Assembly (NCBI GenBank): GCA_964057225.1
Contig: OZ059896.1
Location: 18,042,001 to 18,106,000, forward strand
Length of the DNA: 64,000 bases
Reading direction: 5' to 3'
Origin: Auanema rhodensis
Taxonomy: Eukaryota > Animalia > Nematoda
The position numbers and the translations under genes are program-made. How positions within the stretch are numbered: position 1 is the stretch's first letter; each line of letters begins with the position of its first letter. Shown one piece after another: positions 715-57,983 of the stretch. Below the pieces are notes generated by a model, which saw only the letters and a list, made by a program, of their open reading frames with translations, did no database searches and was not told the origin of the DNA.

Positions 715-2412
715 ATGGCTCGTAGCTCCTTCCTCTTCACCTCTGAATCCGTCTCAGAGGGACATCCTGACAAGATGTGCGATCAGGTTTGGTGTTAAAA
801 CAAATCCTCAATATATTTTGTTTTATTCTTCAGATTTCTGACGCTGTCTTGGATGCCCATTTGGCTCAGGATCCACATGCCAAGGTTGCTTGCGGTAAGT
901 TCTTGCGTTACAGTTAAATCTCACTTTTCTTTAATATTGTTCGAGTTATTACTGAAATTGTTTACAACCTTTTTGTTTTAACATTTGCTATTGATTTTTT
1001 TTAGAAACCGTAACCAAGACCGGTATGATCATGCTCTGCGGAGAAATTACCTCCAAAGCTGTTGTTGATTATCAAACTTTGGTCAGAAACGTCGTCAAGA
1101 AGATCGGATATGACGATTCTAGCAAGGGTTTGTTAAATATTTCAAAAATTCAACGTGAAAATTACTTTATCCTATTTATAGGATTTGATTACAAGACCTG
1201 CAATGTTCTTGTCGCCCTTGAGCAACAATCCCCAGAAATCGCTGCTGGAGTTCACGTTCAAAAGAACGAGGAAGATGTCGGAGCTGGAGATCAAGTAATT
1301 CAGCTATTTTTGTCTTTGCCAACTAAATCCAATTTTGCTTAGGGACTTATGTTCGGATATGCTTCTGATGAGACCGAAGAGGCCATGCCCCTCACCCTCA
1401 AGCTCGCTCACGATTTGAACGCCAAGCTTCACGAGCTCAGAAGAAACGGATCTCTCCCATGGGTCCGCCCAGATTCCAAATCTCAGGTAATAATTTTAAA
1501 TAGTTTGTATCTGTTTTTTTTTTCAAATTTTATTGAATTGTTCTTTAAAACCTATGTTTTGAAGGTCACTATCGAATACTTCTTCGACGGAGGAGCCTGT
1601 ATTCCACGTAGAGTTCACACCATCGTTATCTCCACCCAACACAGCCCAGATATCAGCCTTGATGACTTGAAGAAGGAGATCAAGGAGAAGGTAAAACCCA
1701 AACCTCTTTTGTTTTTAAAAATTTCGAATTTGTCAGGTTGTCGATGTTATCATCCCAGCTAACCTTTATGACTCTGAAACTGTCCTTCACATCAACCCAT
1801 GCGGTACCTTCATTGTTGGAGGACCTATGGGAGATGCTGGTCTTACTGGACGTAAGATCATCGTCGATACCTACGGAGGTTGGGGAGCACACGGTGGTGG
1901 AGCTTTCTCCGGAAAAGACCCCACTAAGGTAAAACATTCTATTAGTTTTGTTTTATAAATTTCTGTATATATAGGTCGATCGTTCTGCCGCTTATGCTGC
2001 TCGCTGGGTAGCCAAGTCTCTCGTCAAGGCTGGTCTTTGCCGTAGATGCTTAGTCCAAGTATCTTATGCTATTGGAGTTGCTGAGCCACTCTCTGTTATG
2101 GTTTTCGCTTTCGGATCATCAGCTTTGACTGCCACTGAACTTCTTGAGGTTGTTAACGATAACTTCGATCTCCGCCCAGGAATGATTATCAAGTAAGCAG
2201 AAGAAGTTTGAATGTTTATGTTTAACCTTTTACCTTTCAGGGATCTTGATCTCAAGAGACCTATCTATGAGAAGACCGCTGAGAACGGTCATTTCGGACA
2301 CAACGATTTCCCATGGGAAGTTCCACGTCCACTTAAGATCTCTCCTGCTATGGCTGAAAAAGCCAAGGGACCTGCTCTCGGTGTTGCTGCTGAGGGAGCC
2401 ATTGCTCACTAA
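715..2412 (+). CDS. sams-1: S-adenosylmethionine synthetase (methionine adenosyltransferase), multi-exon
   Basis: Spliced [27 protein letters not shown]|[20 protein letters not shown]|[18 protein letters not shown]...GAGDQG...[19 protein letters not shown]...AIAH*. Exon 1 715-786, exon 2 834-894, exon 3 from 1005; stop 2410-2412; AATAAA at 2513. Hallmark MAT motifs present. The C-terminal ...EKAKG...AIAH tail resembles C. elegans SAMS-1 as I recall it, so the paralogue assignment is from memory. Confidence 0.95.
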
Positions 2413-25852: not shown

Positions 25853-28800
25853 CATCTGCCTAGTACGTCTGCCATCCGGCTGTTCCTTGTCCACTAGCCG
25901 CTAATCATCTGTCTCCCTTACAACCTTATGCTTTAAGCTAAAGAAAAGAGCACAAAATAATGCCAAATGTTGTGGTAAGTGGAGTAATAAAGCCAAAAGA
26001 GTGTATATATGTTGCACGTGTGCCGTTGTCAACGAAATAAAAACAAAAATCAGAATGTGATGTTTTAAGGACATGCACTACTTCAACATATTTCCAGCAT
26101 TTCAATACATCTGTCAGAACATAGTCTCTCACAAGCTTATTAGTATATTGAGAATAAGAATAAGTTTAACCACACATTTCATTATAGCGTGATGCTATGC
26201 TCGTCTGAATCTTTTCCTACAAGCTGGATTAATAAGTGATGCATCCAATGAAAAATGATCAACACTTTATGGCAATGATGATGAAGAAGATAACATAGTT
26301 AGATGAAGTAGCAGAAGGAAGACCTCCGAATACATACAAAAGGATGTATGAAGTAACATCAGATGGGCAGATGATGAGGCTGATGATGTATGCACATCTG
26401 ATGATTATGGCTCGAAGGTTCATTAGCGGTCTAGTCAAGTAAGTGGCTAGCTTAATTCTGCTGCGCAGAGAATGAATTGGATCAAGACGGCGTTCCTTCC
26501 GTTACCAAATCAGCCACAGATTCAGAAGACAAAGAGCAATTGAAGTCCAGCGTTTAAAATTGTAATTTGTGCTGAGATGGAATAGCATTTTAAATAGAAA
26601 TTTAATGAGCAGCCTAGAGATACGATACATGCTTTGAATCTTTCTGGTTGAGTTCGGTTCCCGCACTCGTCAGCCTACCTGTTCTCATCCATCAACTCTT
26701 CTTGCTATGCTGACTTTCAACCAGTTTCATATTCTCTCCCTGGTACCCTGTATATTTTAAACGAAGACAAGGAAGGAAAGAGCCCCTGGAAAGGGAGCCA
26801 TATGTGGCTGGCAGCTGTACACTAATTGCCAGACATGCTTGGCCCTCTTCCAGCCAGCACATGCACACTAAGCAGCAGCCGGTCGGATGACAAGCCCTTA
26901 GGGCATAAGATCCTTTAGTATTTAGCAATCTCATATAGCATGTGAGAGCAGACGTCTTGTGAGCTTAAACAGCCTATACTACGATTTCGGAAGCAGCTTC
27001 TGTTTTGAAACTGAACCATAAGCATGCACAAGAAACATACACCCATCTTCAGAGCGGTAGTGTATCAGGACCTGCTGAAGTGTCACCACAGCTGATGCGC
27101 CAATTTTAACGATAACTAGCTCATTCCCATGAATAAATTCAAGCGATGAGCAGCAAGAAAATGTAAATGTAACTAAAAATTGAGAAAATAGGCTGACTCT
27201 TCGGACATCTGGACATCATGGATAGATACGCTTGACGACCACACCAACTCCTCGGCCTTTTTAACGCCTGCTGTCTCCCGGTGCCTAAACATGATGTGAT
27301 CATAGTGCACAGGTGAGCTAAGAGACTTGCCGATATCAAACTATGGGTTCTGCCATTCAACCTGTCAAACTACATCAACCATATACGTAAACAAGCCGTC
27401 AGCAATATGATGATGATCAGATAAGTAGAATGATCGGAATTTTCTTTTTTCGGAGAAAAGAGACACATCTGCTAGGTCTCGAGTTATTAGCCAGCTGTGC
27501 GGTCTATATGTGATTGCTGCTATTCCTTCTGCTGCAACTACTGCTGCTGCGGCTGCTCATTTAGCCAAGTTAAGTGATGAAAACACACAAACACGCACAT
27601 TCAGACCACCAGCAGTGTCACCAGCCTGCTTATAAATTCATCTGCGCTTTTCATCCGTCTCAGTAGCAGCCAGTAAGCAAATAATATCATGGCAGAAGGG
27701 AGCCCGCCAGGCTGTTAGAACCCTAAGTACACCTTAAGCATGTGGAAAACATGCTCCTGTTAATGTTTAATATCATTCTGACGGGCAACATTGCAGACGA
27801 CGTCGTTTCAAGTTGTTTTCGTGCGTGTGACATCGGATTTCGAGGTCAGCAGATGCGCATTCTTCAGGTATTATCTCCTTTTTCTTTCACTAAGTGAAAG
27901 AGAAAATTGTTTTTCCATTTCAATGAACATTATGACTTATCACAAGCAATAGCATAGTAAATGAAAACGAAAACTCTGAACTGACATTGTCATCCTTCAT
28001 ACAACTATCATTGCCAAAATATCTGAAGCATTACGAGCATGCCATACAGTCGATTAGTATGATTTCCTGAGATTATGATACCTAACAAAGAAATATTCGA
28101 ATTTCCATACGTCTAAACAGAAAAAAGAATATAACAAAGAACGTAAAGATATAAACGACATGATACCCTCGTTGAAATGAAACTTCAAACATACTTCCAT
28201 GTATGTAAATGTGTCCTTCAATTTTAATTTCTTGGCGTCATCCAGATGAGGCGTCGTCATATATTCATTTTGTTTCTTCCATCCTCCCTCACCTGTCGCA
28301 ATCATCATGTGATTTCAGGTAATGATCATTTTCATTTTCATTTCAACTTTCTTTCAAACCTCCCATATCGCCTTTAAAATATTTATGACTCATTGAGAGA
28401 AATGACAACAATCTGGTCTTTTTTGGCAACTTTCCAATGGCAGATCTGAAGATGTTTCATAAACCAACAGAAAATTTCAACTATTATCTTATTGTTCTTT
28501 TACAAAAACCATGGGAACTTGACATCTGTAAGGAAGAGCAGGATGTGCCGATGCTTTTTCTTCGAATTCTACCAAATCACAGACTTCCGAGCTGTTCACT
28601 TCTTTTAGCTTTTTGACCCGACAAAGTAAAGTCAGCTGTTAAATAAGTTTCTGAGTACCACAAGATTACGTTCAGCTGTTCCGTTTCGTAGCGAAACTCT
28701 GTGACAGCTTCGCTCTTCATCGTTCCTTCTATCACAGTCAACCTTCAGGCATATAAATCTCGAATAAATCTTCATCGGGTCCCTTGCATCTCATTTTCTT

Positions 28801-29772
28801 CATCACTTGCTTTCTCTCTGTCTTCATCTTCTAATTCGTGAACATCTCTACCGAATTCTCTCTTTATTCATTTCTCTCACTCCCATTGCTGTTCCCTTAT
28901 TCTGACTCAGAAATCTGATTCATATAGCAATATATGATCCCTCTTCAACTCATCAGTAGAGAAGTAGAATGGGAAGAAGCATCTGGAACAGCTGAACCTT
29001 AAATCATTTTTTTAATATTTTCAAGAAACTACTATACCTTATTCCAAATAGACATTTGTTTCCATATGTTTCAAACAAGTTCCAGGCTTTCAGCCAAAGA
29101 ACAAACATATTTTAATGATTTTGATCAATGCTTTGTACGGAAAAGCAGGCTTGTCAATAAGATTCAACCGATTATTAACCTATTGGCTGTATAAACATAG
29201 GATTTCAACTCACCTGTTACATCGGCAATTACGTAAAAGGAAAAAGTATTCATGGATGAATAAACAAATGAACAGATGGCCCAAGTTCCGATGAAGCTCA
29301 TTCACAATGAACTGGCGCCCCCCCCCCCCTTCGGCAATGTCTTTGAATTGTGAATAGGAAGTTTCCAATTCGTTGCCATGGACTTTTACCAAGATTTACA
29401 GAATTCTTTTGATGTTTCTCAGAGTTTTCAACTGGTAATGTTGTTGAATACTGTAGCTTGAAGCTTTCCAAGTTGCAATGTGCAAACCTTAGTTTTACAT
29501 CTGTAATTATAATCATCAAGCACTATAACATCATCTTCTTCTTCATTAACGTCATCATCTGTTTTTCTTAGCAGACTGAAACAAATTGCTATTAAGATGG
29601 AAATAAGCATGACAGGTGAAGCAACAACATCTTAAGACCTTTTCGGCTTCAGCTTCAGCTGGTCCTAACATTGATTGAAGTGATGTGGATGGAGAATCAT
29701 GTGTCTTGAAGCTGATCTTAGCATTACACGTGTGAATGCTGTTAATGGTAGCTTCTAATGCTATATCATTGA

Positions 29773-29825
<53 letters not shown>

Positions 29826-30103
29826 GTGCTGTGGTACAAGGGAGGAATGGAAGGGTTTACCTTTCGTATAATGCTGATATCTATTTATTTTTATATATAT
29901 TCTAATGCAGCTGTTCAAAAGCAGGTAGAGCATAGAAGAGTTATCAAAATGGGAGAGGGCTTGAGAAGGACATCATCATGATCGTCATCTTAGCAGAGTA
30001 ATCATGTTACGAACCTTTTAGGTATCGTAGTATCGATAATCCGGCCATCAGTTAAGCTTCAGTGTATCATGTCTGCCTATAGGGTGGTATCATTTTCCAT
30101 CTG
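25853..30103. promoter_or_regulatory. Extended E-box array upstream of HLH-A
   Basis: At least 16 CATCTG/CAGATG, 8 CAGCTG and 4 CACCTG/CAGGTG counted by eye. Confidence 0.6.
29779..29822. repeat. (GA)n microsatellite
   Basis: Perfect GA run of ~22 units. Confidence 0.9.
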
Positions 30104-30683: not shown

Positions 30684-30910
30684 ATCCCGCCCTTTCTTTA
30701 ATTCTCATTCTCTACCTCTCTCCTATTCTCCTGTCTTATATCGCCTTCTTCGGACCATCGGCAATACTCTTCGCACCCAACAAAGTGGGCGTGGCTAAGC
30801 AAGAAGGGCGGAGGCCGGTCGTGTAGATCCGTCGTCGTCAGTCCGTTGTCGTACATCCTTGTTCGTTGGCTGATTTGCTCTTCTCCAGCTCTCAACTATA
30901 CTGTCAAAGA
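30684..30910 (+). promoter_or_regulatory. GC-box-rich promoter of HLH-A
   Basis: CCCGCCC, GGGCGTGGCT and GGGCGGAGG Sp/KLF-type boxes in an otherwise AT-rich context, preceded by a CT-repeat tract. Confidence 0.55.
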
Positions 30911-31013
30911 TATCTGTTATCTAATCGGATTACTCATTACTCAGAAGAAGTTTCAATAACTATTTTCTGTTTCTATTGCTATCCTTCAAAACAGTATTCA
31001 ACTTCAATTAACA

Positions 31014-31477
31014 ATGAAATCATCTCCTATTCGTTCTGCTCGTCCAGCTACTTCTCTTTCACCTAAAGGACGTGTTCGTAAGAGTTCTGAAGAACGAAAA
31101 GAAAAGTTGAAGGTATGTATTACTTCATATTCTTAATTTCAATTTCAATTTCATTTTTTTGATTCAAAATTCATTTATTTTGTTTCTTTGGCATTTTTAA
31201 TATCTAAATTTAAATTTATATTTTAATATATTTAACTAAAGAAAAATTGAATTTTCAATTACTCAGTTATTCTATCCAATTTCTAATTTTTTTTGTTTTT
31301 AAGGTCGAAGCTACATTACGTCGACTTCTTGGATCTGATGATGATTCATCTCAACTCGATGTCGTTCTCTCTGCTATTCAATACATTCGTGATCTTCAAC
31401 ACCAATTGGATTGTCATCAAGAAAATATTCTTCCATCAGGTTTTGAGCAGCTTTTTGAGAAAGCTGTTCGAACATGA
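31014..31477 (+). CDS. Small Id/extramacrochaetae-like HLH protein lacking a canonical basic region (HLH-A, 90 aa)
   Basis: Exon 1 31014-31112, intron GTATGT...TTTTAAG, exon 2 31304-31477: MKSSPIRSARPATSLSPKGRVRKSSEERKEKLK|VEATLRRLLGSDDDSSQLDVVLSAIQYIRDLQHQLDCHQENILPSGFEQLFEKAVRT*. Helix-2 signature S-x-L-D-V-V-x-x-A-I-x-Y-I-x-x-L-Q. Confidence 0.8.
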
Positions 31478-32068
31478 TTTCTCTACCATTTCTATTTCCT
31501 TTTGGAAGTTTCATGAGTTGCTCTATGAGCAAATCATCTGATCTAGCTACTTCAATCTTCACGGGTTTTATTAACAAACTGGTCTCTGTCTGTATTCTAA
31601 GAAATGGATGTTCTTGTTTGAAAATTAGTTTGTTAAAAGATTTTAATCTATGCTCTTAATCTACAAAATTTAAAATGAAGTTGTAGAATAAAAATGAAAA
31701 AAAAATTGAATGTTCTATATTATAAAATGAAAAATAAAATATTTCATCGTTAAATTTTATTATTTTTATAAAATATATACTATAAACTATATTCTTTATC
31801 AAACTTTTATTATACAATCTTATATATATATATATTCTGAATGATTTACACATATATAAATGGATATTAAGTCGGATATGCTACCTGGCGAACTGATAAT
31901 TCATAATTCTGGATGAACTAATTCAGCTTAAGCAGCAAGCTTAGTTAGGCTTGGTTCAACACTTCCGTCTTGCTTTTATTCATCTCTTAGGCTATTCATT
32001 CTATAACCCAAAATCTCAATATATCTGTAAAAGCATACGGGCCGCTACGATGATGACGACGACTGGTC

Positions 32069-45800: not shown

Positions 45801-47239
45801 CAACAACAAAACCATATTTAACGGTTTTTAACCATTTTTTTCTCTCTGCCATTTCCTAAGCTGCGACAGGTTTTTGATGGCATATGCAATCGGTTGTTAT
45901 CTTTTCCTTTTTCATCATGCCCACCACTTCATATTGTCACATACACTCTCTCTCTCTCCCTCTCTCCCTCTCTCTTGCTCTTTGTGTCTCTAGGCTTATT
46001 AGAGATATCAAGGTAAAAATCTTTTTGTCGGTTAACGTGTCTGTCACTCTTTTCACGTAAATGCCAATCTAGAAATCTGTAGCGTTGAACTGTTAAATCT
46101 GACAACATTCTTTTAGTATAATTAGCCATCTATCGGCATCTTTTTCAATAAAAATTATAAAAAAAAAGGAAAAATGTTGTTCAATCAGTAATAGAAAACA
46201 TTAGATAGATATGAATACAATCTGAATAAACCATTAACGGAAAATCTTCTAACAACAACAAACATGCAACTCTTGCGTCATGGCGGCAAACTTTAAGAGA
46301 TAAAAAAGAAAAAAATAGTTTTAATTGGAAGATATTACGCCTATATATGGGTGAGGATAATAAAAATATTTGGAATACAGATATCACCTAAGTTTACTCA
46401 TATGCTCATAAGTTGTTTCATTGAAAAACATATAAGATGACTTTGTGGATTTGCTCTTCTTCTTCTATTTCACCTTATAGCACATGCTCTATAGAATAGC
46501 TTATGTGCAGATGTTTTTTTTTTGAAAAACCAAGCACATAAGCCACGGAAAGAGACAGAATCAATCCGTTGTCAGCGGCAAGCTGCTGAACGGGTGGTCA
46601 GTTGCGTCAGAAAGCTGTGTACTGCCTTGTGTTCTTCTTTATATTGTACTTTTTTCCTTCATATAATTAACTAATATTATGAGGAAATCTGGTTAAGTAT
46701 ACTATATGTATATAGTTATTAAGTAGAAATATGCACTAAACAGGTCAAGTCACTGCATGAATGAATGCGTGAGATGGCTTTAAGCCAGGTATGGAAGTGT
46801 TGCAAGTGGTATACGAAGGATCCAATATTGCTTTGAGCAGATGGATAGAAGAAATGTTTTTTTATCTTTTGAAAATAAAAAAAGAAAATATAATTTGTAT
46901 AAATTTTTAATTTTATATACTGTATATAGTATATATAAATAATATAATTACATCATTAATTATAAAATAAACAAATAAACAAACAAATTGTCTATGCACA
47001 ACCCGATACTAGGCATCACAGAATGAGATTGATAACGATAAAGCTTATTATAAGCTTTTAAAGAGACGAGAACAACGGAAAAAAGCGAGACATACATACA
47101 GAAAAAATATTTCTTGATTTGGTTATGAGTAAAACGATTAGATTACGACGTAGAAGGCACTTGATAAGCATTTTTGACATTTGTTTTGAACAGCAACTGA
47201 AGCAACTTGCTCAAGCTGTTGTCGACTCTTATCTCCAAT

Positions 47240-48179
47240 TTAGCGTTTCTTCTCAATAGACTTTCTCTTCTTAACGCGCTGATTGCGGCGGTTATGACTG
47301 AGTACGGTAGCGGCTGGTAGGCCGGCAAGCATTTCTGAAAAAAATGAAAAATTAGGAAAACAGTTCAAGTTTAAATAGGTTTATTATATAGTTTTGGGCA
47401 TATATTTGTAGTTAAATTTGGGTTTAGTAAGAAGATTATAAGGAAAAAGGTCATCTGATATTGAATATCGTTACGAAGGTAGATGAAACTGAATAGAATT
47501 GAGGCAAAGAAGGGTTAAAAGTGGTTGAGAAGAATAGGAGTGTGAGTAGAAAACGAGAGAAGAATGACCTCGAACTAGCTGATCAGCAAGAAAGTTTCAT
47601 CTAAGAGGTCTAATCGAGATAACGACTTAATTGCAACCTTGTCCCCTCTCAGAGTATGAGCTACGGGAAATGGTAGTAATCCGTCTGATTTTAAAAATAA
47701 AAGCAAACTGTATAGTGGATGACAAAAAAATTGAAGAAAAACCAAAACAAGTGAAGACGACTGAAGTCGTTGTTTGGAATTGAAACATCCCCCCATTACG
47801 ATAAAAAACTGTGAACAAAAAAGAAAAAAAGAAGAGGAATAGAGTGAATATCATGGGAAAATGAAAATATTAAAGGATATTTTGTAAAAAGAGAAGATAT
47901 TGTTTGAAAGAAAAACTTAAAATTACCTCTGGGAAGAGATCCTTTTTGGACACGAGCAATGATGGTGGCTTCAAGTTGTTGGATGTAATCGACAGCATTT
48001 AGAAGCATATCGGTAGCATTCTTGTTAGCTGGTGATGGTGGAAGTAAAGCTGATAGACGACGTAGTTCAATCTGTTCGGCACGTGTAAGGGCTGGAACTC
48101 GTTGAGCTTCACGTGCTTGGGCTTTGAATGAAGTAGTTTGGATGGATGGCTTAGAAGTCTTAGGACTTGGCTTAGGCAT
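47240..48179 (-). CDS. Second small emc/Id-like HLH protein lacking a canonical basic region (HLH-B, ~115 aa)
   Basis: Exon 1 48179-47927, intron GTAATT...TTTCAG, exon 2 47334-47240: MPKPSPKTSKP...LTRAEQIELRRLSALLPPSPANKNATDMLLNAVDYIQQLEATIIARVQKGSLPR|EMLAGLPAATVLSHNRRNQRVKKRKSIEKKR*. Confidence 0.8.
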
Positions 48180-48249: not shown

Positions 48250-48530
48250 GAGTTGACAGTGGTTGAGAGCGAACGAGGTGTTGGCAGTCGAGGTGAGACT
48301 CGAATTGACGAAGGTCGAAAGAATGTGGGAGGGGCAGATCAGATCTGAAGGAGGCGGGGCTTAACGCGGGGTGGGGAGGAAGAGCAAGGGTGGGCTGGTC
48401 GTCGGCAAGTGCAATTGCTTTGATACCGTTACAGACAGATATTAATGTAAATAACTGTATAAATGAAGGAGAGGCAGGTAGAGAGAGAGAGAGAGATTGA
48501 AAGAGAGAAAGAGAGAGAGAGAGATTGGGA
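48250..48530 (-). promoter_or_regulatory. GC-box-rich promoter of HLH-B
   Basis: GGCGGGGC, GGGGTGGGG, GGGTGGGCT and GGGAGGGG (+ strand reading) at 48326-48396, followed further upstream by a GA/CT repeat at 48480-48524. Confidence 0.55.
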
Positions 48531-55805: not shown

Positions 55806-57983
55806 TTAGATAGTCTGTAGACCCATTTTTCTCATCTCAATTTCCAAATCTTTCAAATTTCTTTCCAACATGTCAACCTCTTCGAGTCTTCCAGCAGCTG
55901 CAGCTTGAGTTAAATAACTGAAACGTTACCGTTTAAATAACAGATAATCTCTTTTTAAGAATAATTGACAAACCCTTTAATGATATCTCTTTGTTCATAT
56001 AATGGATGTTGCATATCTTCTTCGTCCAAAAATGGGTTATATGATCTAAAAAAATATTATTGATCAACCTGTGAGACAAATCTTACCTTGTTTGATTCGG
56101 AGTCCAGCCTTCATCTACCGTTTTTGAACGAGAAGTAGCCGGAGTTATTGGACTGCTGTGAGAATTGACTAGTGCTGGTTTCTGAGGTAACTACAACAGT
56201 GCTTATAGGGAAAGTTTTCAATAGTTCTACTTACTACTTTCGGAGGTCGGTCAATTTGGGAAGCTCTTGATTCTTCAATTTGTTTTGCGATAATCTTTTT
56301 GTGTTGCTCAACCAGCTCCAAATATTCCTCAGGAGTTGGTAAAGAAATCATTCCGGACACAACTTCCTTAAAAGGGATGATAAAGTAAAGTTTAAAGCAT
56401 AGTATAATTACTTGAAGAGTAGTAACCGCAACATATCTAATATTTTTTCGCAATTGTTGTTCCTTCAAAGCATTTTCACTTCCGTTTTGAAGAATACTCT
56501 GGCTAAAATTATTTTCGTGCATGTATAGCAAATAATAACTTTAATAAAATACCTCAAAGCATCTATTTCTTTTTGTTTTTGATATATTTTCTGCCTCATC
56601 TCTTCAGCATCTTTTAATGTATATATAGTTTCTCCATTACTTTAAATAGAAGAATTTAGAATACCGAAAACAAAAAAACTTACTTTATACTTAAAGCCAT
56701 ACGCACGTAACCAGGTGATAATGCTGTTATTTCTCTTAAATAAATATCCAGAGTCGAATATTGCTCAGCTAAAGCTGGAGCCACATGCTGCTCCATCATT
56801 TCCTCCCTTCGACGGAGATCAGTTAGACAGGAAGTACAAACTCGAAGACATTCAGTTGCATCCTGAAACAACATAATTTATTTTCAAAACTTTTGCTTAA
56901 AAGAGACTTACTTGTTGTAGCAAAGACCCAAGGCTTCCTTCAGAACCATCATTACTTATTTTATTTACTGCTCCTTCAAAGAACATTTTCATTTTTTCTG
57001 TAGTTTTTTGTGTAATTTCTAAAAATTTGCGACCGTGCGACGGGGAGCCTTGCTGATTTGGTTGCTCAGGCTCCGGGTAGGTTACAAGAGCGGGGTTGGT
57101 TAATTTCCCTGAGAGTAGGCTAAATAATTCTAATTCAGCATGATACCTACTGGCTGATACAAACGAGAGAAATCTGCTACATTGATGGCACATCACTTTC
57201 CCACAAAGGCGACAATGATGTCGTCGTCTTGTAAGTCCAAATTTAGCAGCACAAGATGGACAAACTGCTGAATCTCTATCAGCTGACCATGGAACAATTT
57301 CTCTTTCAAAGTCTGCAACAATCAAATTCGAAAACAACAATTCGTGATAATATGGGTAAACCTTTTCGTTTAGCAGGATCACTTGGACGCTCGTTGATGA
57401 GGCGATCCAACCTAATAATCAACATATTCGTTCGCACAGCACTTTCATTCACAGAAGCATCCCGGGACTGGATGAAATACTCTTTGTGAGATCTTACAAC
57501 GCCTTAAACAAAAAAATGTTTTTAAAACATAAAACTATCTTCCGACCTATCTCTGCTCTTACAGGCGGAGGGCGAATAACAGGAGCAGCTCTTGGTCGAG
57601 TTTTTTCTTGCACGGCATTTGCATAATTTGAAAGATTGGACATACTGTTCGATACACCAACATTAACTTGTGAAAGATCCAACGAAACTTTAGCATCAAT
57701 TTTACGAATACCTCGTTTTGCTTTATCAAAAAGACCTGCGAATAAAAAAAATTTTTAAATAAATGAATGACTTAGTAAACCTTTCATGTTCTGTAAAACG
57801 ACATCAGTGAGATCATTTCCGCCTTCAGGATGAACAGCTTCAACATGAGACTGTAGGGTTGGAAAATCGCCCAAATCACACATACAGAAGGGACATATAA
57901 ATCCCTATAAAGGAATGGTGATTCATAATGTAATACACCTAATAGCAAGAAGAAACTCTTACCTGCCGTACGAGATCGGTCAT
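55806..57983 (-). CDS. rabs-5: Rabenosyn-5 (C2H2 finger, FYVE domain, NPF motif, C-terminal Rab5-binding domain)
   Basis: MTDLVRQ|GFICPFCMCDLGDFPTLQSHVEAVH; FYVE domain VPWSADRDSAVCPSCAAKFGLTRRRHHCRLCGKVMCHQCS...LRVCTSC; YNPFLDEED...QAAAAGRLEEVDMLERNLKDL; stop 55806. Confidence 0.93.

Follow-up and report, generated by a model that had tools for sequence, protein, structure and literature searches.

At 31014-31477 of the 64-kb stretch of Auanema rhodensis DNA analysed here (the window) lies a two-exon gene on the plus strand, which we have called HLH-A. Its first coding exon (31014..31112, +), whose end is set by the transcript joint, is translated from the ATG at 31014 into 33 aa (aa 1-33) that begin with MKSSPIRS, contain a second SPK at aa 16-18 and comprise an N-terminal tail, a basic-like segment and the beginning of helix 1. 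The second coding exon (31304..31477, +) supplies a further 57 aa (aa 34-90) and the stop codon and, judged by translation, Pfam and HMMER, carries the remainder of helix 1, the loop, helix 2 and a C-terminal motif. The two are separated by an intron of 191 nt (31113..31303, +; GT..AG, phase 0), which falls between K33 and V34, inside helix 1. This structure had been proposed from the letters of the DNA, and the start codon, the two exon translations (including the helix 2 quoted at the time) and the 31112/31304 splice junction of that original prediction are all correct.

The splice joint is borne out by transcript contigs (657-792 nt) from 4 public runs, all belonging to one study. These contigs match the window at 100% identity, with 0 mismatches, over 30740-31112 and 31304-31732, and skip exactly the 191 nt that begin with GT and end with AG. 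The runs are labelled just as probable RNA; since the intron has been precisely removed from the contigs, RNA is what they contain. The share of sampled words present in these runs (0.73-0.78) likewise fits the loss of a 191-nt intron from the 901-nt query. At the 5' side the contigs start at 30740-30852 and continue unbroken to 31109/31112, giving the 5' untranslated region a minimum extent of 30740..31013 (+). Direct reading of the sequence found no upstream ATG in this transcribed part (30740-31013), so that the first ATG of the transcript is that at 31014 and the 90-aa HLH-A protein is the expected product. At the 3' side the contigs end at 31655-31732, and the 3' untranslated region (31478..31732, +) has an AATAAA near 31688, about 30 nt ahead of the contig ends. 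HLH-A is, in summary, a genuine, spliced and expressed gene for a small 90-aa HLH protein without a canonical basic region.

On the minus strand, 16 kb from HLH-A, there is another small HLH gene, HLH-B (47239-48179, -). It is predicted to encode 115 aa in two exons (exon 1, 48179-47927; exon 2, 47334-47239) flanking a GT..AG intron (47926-47335), and the predicted protein has a C-terminal K/R cluster. HLH-B matches the Pfam HLH profile with E 0.12, and its best PDB match is the bHLH of yeast Cbf1; its closest relative is a protein of Auanema sp. JU1783 (71% identical), and its relationship to HLH-A is a distant one at best (hhalign P 0.003). An exon of FYVE/Rabenosyn type is located upstream of HLH-B (56897-57382, -), and because such a neighbour is also present beside the Auanema sp. 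JU1783 orthologue of HLH-B (L001 2626-4761), synteny is conserved at this point; no HLH-A orthologue was found within 10 kb of the Auanema sp. JU1783 HLH-B gene. Elsewhere in the window, an open reading frame at 1349-1762 (+) may be part of an S-adenosylmethionine synthetase gene. Rfam gave no match across the whole 64-kb window.

By its full-length similarity, its length and the position of its intron at K|V in helix 1, HLH-A is an orthologue of the C. elegans gene Y7A9D.1. When exon 2 of HLH-A was run by HMMER against 1.84 billion representative proteins, 16 matches were obtained, the top ones being small proteins of Dictyocaulus (the best match, E 3e-13), Caenorhabditis auriculariae, C. bovis, C. 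remanei, Pristionchus and Diploscapter. A profile built from those matches retrieved 31 proteins, with E values across the family from 3e-13 to 1e-39. Those that carry a species name are all rhabditine (strongylids, Caenorhabditis, Diploscapter and Pristionchus; 4 have no species name), and the 31 include a C. elegans protein of 115 aa and one from Haemonchus that bears the name Y7A9D.1. The members of the family have 90-117 aa and come, so far, from rhabditine (clade V) nematodes only; HLH-A is 69% identical to the Dictyocaulus protein, its closest orthologue, and about 50% identical to the Caenorhabditis proteins. Y7A9D.1 itself is on chromosome IV of C. elegans, where the 10 kb to either side of it contain no other called gene, and its only intron interrupts the equivalent Lys|Val pair, also in phase 0. 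The two genes are thus alike in length class, in having two exons, in the K|V intron and in their isolation in an E-box-rich, gene-poor stretch. HLH-A differs from its orthologues in having QEN where 25 of 25 have KEN, in an extra N-terminal S-P-I-R and, as regards the Caenorhabditis proteins, in lacking their Ser/Pro-rich C-terminal tail.

The database name of the family is purely automatic ("BHLH domain-containing protein", UniProt), and no mention of Y7A9D.1 was found in the literature searched, HLH-A being a new member of a catalogued but unstudied nematode HLH family. The language-model neighbours of HLH-A were HLH clusters together with a 107-aa nematode cluster bearing the same automatic name. 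A word-index protein search with exon 2 gave no match, probably on account of its three-word requirement and length filter and not for want of relatives. The original prediction had remarked that the gene is easily missed, and this applies to the public databases too, whose models of the family are frequently wrong: several strongylid models start inside the intron and lack exon 1. Five models (P0004, P0005, P0006, P0039 and P0040) begin in this way, and two others are over-extended, that of C. auriculariae at the N-terminus and that of C. bovis at the C-terminus (P0003, P0007). The HLH-A family thereby also corrects several shortened or over-extended gene models in parasite genomes.

The HLH fold was assessed by Pfam and PDB searches with the separate HLH-A exons and with the family profile, and by AF2 modelling of the closest orthologue (P0001, 69% identical) with a 26-sequence alignment. 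On exon 2 the Pfam HLH profile (PF00010) scored 12.6 bits (E 0.12), short of its gathering cut-off of 20.7 bits; the full-length orthologues gave no HLH match at all in Pfam, and phmmer with exon 2 against PDB returned myosin and P35 noise only, with no Id chain. Searched against all PDB sequences, the family profile had HLH proteins (MYC2, ASCL1, ID1, TAL1, MYF5, SREBP1, MYOD and ID3) as 13 of its best 14 matches, marginal as these are (E at least 0.016), and a rerun with a deeper profile bore this out. hhalign of the nematode family with a Pfam-positive HLH unit gave 93.6% probability (P 2e-7). In the AF2 model of the closest orthologue a helix (22-41), a loop of 7 residues, a second helix (49-68, corresponding to aa 50-69 of HLH-A) and a weaker third helix (79-91) are predicted, with pLDDT >90 across residues 31-70. 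Foldseek with this model against PDB found nothing at E <=0.001 (E >0.7), its top matches being bHLH domains, and structural realignment gave Z 4.4-5.2 to CLOCK/BMAL1, E12/E47, MITF, TCF4, MAX and the Id1:E47 complex, with an rmsd of 2.7 Å across 54 residues for MITF. Since Z values of about 5 are common among helical hairpins, these figures back the sequence evidence and would not stand alone. HLH-A thus has two amphipathic helices homologous to accepted domains, in the pattern L-R-x-x-V-P/G ... S-K/Q-x-E-x-L-x-x-A-I-x-Y-I-x-x-L, its best-conserved part being helix 2 (aa 50-69; 31352..31411, +), as placed by the AF2 model of the closest orthologue and by hhalign. We consider the HLH homology of HLH-A well supported by these comparisons, although it remains below the Pfam cut-off and the support, while good, is indirect.

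Outside the nematodes, the nearest relatives of exon 2 are environmental eukaryote proteins (P0002, P0013, P0015 and P0016) composed of tandem HLH units of about 40 aa without a basic region, which score 40-41 bits on Pfam HLH. One of these (P0002) has 1063 aa and was matched by the query in 10 separate stretches, and the best PDB match of the tandem-HLH protein nearest to the family is Max, not Id. A MEF2_binding match of exon 1 in Pfam (E 0.03, 14.9 vs 27 bits) was judged to be due to chance, as were scattered sub-threshold Pfam matches of the orthologues (SWIB, Inhibitor_I24 and others).

HLH-A was also compared with the group D HLH proteins, Id1-4 and Drosophila Extramacrochaetae (Emc). 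HLH-A is like them in being small, in lacking a canonical basic region, in a helix 2 that ends Y-I-R-D-L-Q as in Id1 and, putatively, in a possible role as an inhibitory partner. It differs from them in its conserved basic-like E-R segment, in its shorter loop and atypical helix 1, and in where the intron lies; the complete absence of a basic region that marks Id/Emc is not found in HLH-A, which has a basic-rich, if degenerate, segment with E-R. In an hhalign comparison of the family profile with 8 HLH domains taken from the supplement to the metazoan bHLH census (PMC1828162), Id1 scored best (27.6, P 2e-5), followed by SREBP (24.8), an achaete-scute-family (ASCa) domain (22.4), Drosophila Emc (21.7), Hey (14.2) and AP4, FIGLA and Myc (about 13). 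Id1 comes first because of a shared Y-I-R-D/E-L-Q motif, but the lead is narrow and is not shared by Emc; the predicted resemblance of helix 2 to that of Id1 is therefore real but unspecific, with SREBP, the ASCa domain and Emc close behind.

These data bear on the idea that Id/Emc (bHLH group D) has a true nematode orthologue in HLH-A, one that evolves fast and escaped the published censuses through its divergence. Small size, an HLH without a canonical basic region and the first place of Id1 among the 8 domains would all agree with it, as would the E-box-rich surroundings described below, which fit an Id-type feedback loop. There is, moreover, an empty slot for such a gene: the metazoan census (Simionato 2007, PMC1828162 supplement) credits C. 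elegans with no Emc-family gene, and its list of 39 C. elegans genes lacks Y7A9D.1, with no Y7A9 entry in the supplementary files (PMC1828162). We nevertheless regard such orthology as distinctly unlikely, for several reasons: (i) Drosophila Emc does no better than SREBP or the ASCa domain. (ii) In the PDB ranking of the family profile, ID1 is mixed with MYC2, ASCL1 and TAL1 at equal scores. (iii) Exon 2 alone matches no Id chain in PDB, and the search of 1.84 billion proteins with it returned no canonical Id/Emc at E <1e-3. (iv) The basic-region-like R-I-x-K-S-S-x-E-R aligns with TAL1 and ASCL1 and has nothing comparable in Id/Emc, where the region preceding helix 1 shows no conservation of this kind. 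(v) The intron sits inside helix 1. From sequence affinity, as gauged on the 8 domains and the PDB ranking, no specific Id/Emc ancestry of the family emerges.

The segment in question, R-V-R-K-S-S-E-E-R-K-E-K-L-K (aa 20-33; 31071..31112, +), recognised in the family alignment and by HMMER, is conserved across the family as I-R-K-S-S-x-E-R-x-E-K-x-K, as strongly as the HLH itself and with I, K and E nearly invariant. The original prediction had counted back from helix 1 and concluded that the DNA-contacting Glu and Arg are not in register, their places being taken by Ser and Glu. Without gaps this reading stands: when the C-terminal end of helix 1 is anchored with L38-R-R-L-L42-G43 on positions 23-28, as in the alignments with Pfam (which has L38 at profile position 23), ID1 and the Pfam-positive HLH unit, Ser24 falls on position 9, Glu27 on position 12 and Arg28 on position 13. 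In the same register, core positions 16 and 20 are taken by Lys and Glu, which is not a canonical helix 1, so that the dimer geometry of HLH-A is uncertain. The conclusion does not carry over, however, to the gapped register obtained by HMMER with MYC2, ASCL1 and TAL1 and by hhalign with the ASCa domain. There, a 3-residue gap in helix 1 sets the conserved Glu27-Arg28 on E9-R10 and Val34 on position 16, with E and K at positions 12 and 13, and with respect to the dimer core the E-R pair is moved along the helix; the TAL1 alignment also pairs the R-I-x-x-x-S-x-E-R of the family. A register shifted in the same way is also suggested by hhalign with HLH-B, where the residues lacking are those at the end of helix 1.

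Position 12 of bHLH proteins is a near-universal phosphate-contacting Arg. In HLH-A it is Glu in both registers and R12 is missing either way, which makes canonical E-box reading unlikely. The possibility raised at the outset that RVRKSSEERK might serve as a basic region is upheld as far as the alignment of E-R with E9-R10 of DNA-binding bHLHs goes; for function, canonical E-box binding by HLH-A appears unlikely, and some DNA contact is conceivable. The resemblance to TAL1/SCL and Achaete-Scute has similar bounds: HMMER aligns R-I-x-x-x-S-x-E-R and helices 1 and 2, with marginal scores, but positions 12/13 of HLH-A are E, K instead of R, x, helix 1 is three residues short and, compared with these proteins, HLH-A has no other domains.

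HLH-A could still be an atypical bHLH factor that binds DNA, as a homo- or heterodimer on a non-canonical site, with R-x-R-K...E-R-K-E-K as a modified basic region. A segment as conserved as the HLH, with 6-7 basic residues, predicted by AF2 to be helical and continuous with helix 1, would be expected of such a factor, and so would the alignment of E-R with E9-R10 of five DNA-binding bHLHs and the fit of V, L and L of helix 1 to core positions 16, 20 and 23 in the shifted register (hhalign with HLH-B). We consider it unlikely, because position 12 is Glu and not the phosphate-contacting Arg in both registers, because the alignments require either the 3-residue gap or a helix 1 that is one turn short, and because every score is marginal. 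In addition, the conservation of the segment could equally reflect a nuclear-localisation signal or a kinase site, R-K-S-S-E-E fitting both basophilic and CK2 patterns. We infer from these alignments that the ancestor of the Y7A9D.1 family was a bHLH with a genuine basic region, which has since become degenerate.

The N-terminus had been a further argument for an Id-like protein. Ser5 of Id2/Id3 is a CDK2 site, and S4-P-I-R of HLH-A (31023..31034, +) fits the full CDK-type consensus [ST]-P-x-[KR] at the same distance from the N-terminus; on this view HLH-A would resemble Id2/Id3 in being switched when CDK2 phosphorylates Ser4 of MKSSPIR. The parallel did not survive the comparison with the family. 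The Ser4 site is specific to the HLH-A lineage, with an SP at that place in none of the 25 orthologues, whose N-termini read M-K-A-M-H-R-E-T-R-P, M-K-N-I-S-A-R-P and similar, and conservation of SPxR in nematode homologues was the very test that had been set; an Id2/Id3-type N-terminal S-P-x-R is thus a feature of HLH-A only and not of the family. The conserved site is the second one, S16-P-K-G-R (31059..31073, +), whose SP is kept in 19 of 25 orthologues, but there the basic residue at +3 is found in Pristionchus only. We read the likeness of S4-P-I-R to Id2/Id3 as a chance resemblance and consider a CDK2 switch highly improbable, all the more so because the cell-cycle-type motif that does run through the family, KEN, is precisely the feature that HLH-A lacks.

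This motif is present in all 25 orthologues, usually as D/G-K-E-N-x-L-P followed by F-x-x-L-F, and near the C-terminus in Pristionchus. HLH-A has in its place, by the family alignment, Q-E-N-x-L-P-x-x-F-x-x-L-F (31418..31456, +), the QEN being encoded at 31418-31426 with a CAA codon that is the same in the RNA contigs. This suggests that a conserved, degron-like KEN motif has been lost in A. rhodensis HLH-A. If KEN were an APC/C degron, cell-cycle-linked turnover would be a trait of the family that is lost or weakened in HLH-A. The sole family-wide hint of a link with the cell cycle would then be one that HLH-A is missing, the opposite of the earlier emphasis on a CDK site.

The surroundings of the gene are rich in E-boxes. 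The 4.25 kb upstream of HLH-A (25853-30103) contain 44 CANNTG against 23.6 +/- 4.5 expected, with CAGCTG occurring 8 times (1.2 expected) and CAGATG/CATCTG 17 times (3.5 expected), the expectations being those of a first-order Markov null and of local bins only, from which the genome-wide background may differ. Within the window, the excess is concentrated at 20-36 kb. In C. elegans the 10 kb upstream of Y7A9D.1 have CAGCTG 9 times, with 0.9 expected, and CACCTG/CAGGTG 10 times, with 1.9 expected (first-order Markov), and one CAGCTG and one CACCTG/CAGGTG fall within about 130 nt of the ATG. Such an excess, present in both of these distant species, suggests regulation of HLH-A/Y7A9D.1 by class A bHLHs, as occurs in the E-protein/Id feedback loop.

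Taken together, these observations lead us to a preferred reading, in which our confidence is about evenly balanced: HLH-A would be a bHLH-derived protein with a degenerate basic region that works mainly by dimerisation, and a modulator that is Id-like by function and not by ancestry. The family would descend from a DNA-binding bHLH rather than from Id/Emc; HLH-A would pair with the E protein HLH-2 or with other class A bHLHs, its putative partners; the resulting dimers would bind E-boxes poorly or differently, and thereby exert an Id-like modulation; and the gene would itself be a bHLH target through the E-box-rich upstream deserts seen in both species. An Id-like inhibitory role of HLH-A is plausible, and the dominant-negative action under cell-cycle control that the original prediction had inferred is putative. 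There is a parallel in plants, where the atypical HLH proteins of the PRE/ILI type (Pfam bHLH_ILI) act by titrating bHLH partners. These are, like HLH-A, HLH-only proteins of about 90 aa and are among its feature-based neighbours; they belong to an unrelated lineage, and their language-model feature score of 0.75-0.80 makes them an analogy only and is not evidence of membership.

C. elegans has, to our knowledge, a single E protein, HLH-2. No Id/Emc gene is listed for this species that might restrain it; the known control of HLH-2 is by protein degradation (PMC4511211), and the literature searched contains no explicit statement on the absence of Id in worms beyond the census table. HLH-A, conserved, expressed and HLH-only, with Y7A9D.1 as its C. 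elegans orthologue, would be a candidate for the Id-like role that seems to be missing in worms. More tentatively, and with the balance of probability against it, we propose that nematodes own a working equivalent of Id, in which the Y7A9D.1/HLH-A family (perhaps together with HLH-B) titrates HLH-2, is induced by HLH-2 via the E-box-rich deserts and is tuned through KEN and APC/C in most species. If this were true, the negative-feedback loop between E proteins and Id would have either evolved independently or diverged beyond recognition. And if HLH-A were merely a divergent orphan bHLH, its family would still be missing from the published 39-gene census.

Finally, GCTCTCAAC-(2-4 nt)-CTGTCAA is common to the promoters of HLH-A (30888-30907, +) and HLH-B (48253-48270, -), in the same orientation; the HLH-A copy stands 107-126 nt, and the HLH-B copy 74-91 nt, upstream of the respective ATG. 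This pattern, which was chosen after seeing the data, has just 2 matches in the window and 0 in 100 shuffles. The shared motif was looked for in the C. elegans and Auanema loci and was not found there. KLF/Sp-like GC boxes (GGGCGTGGC, CCCCGCCTCC) recur in all four promoters.
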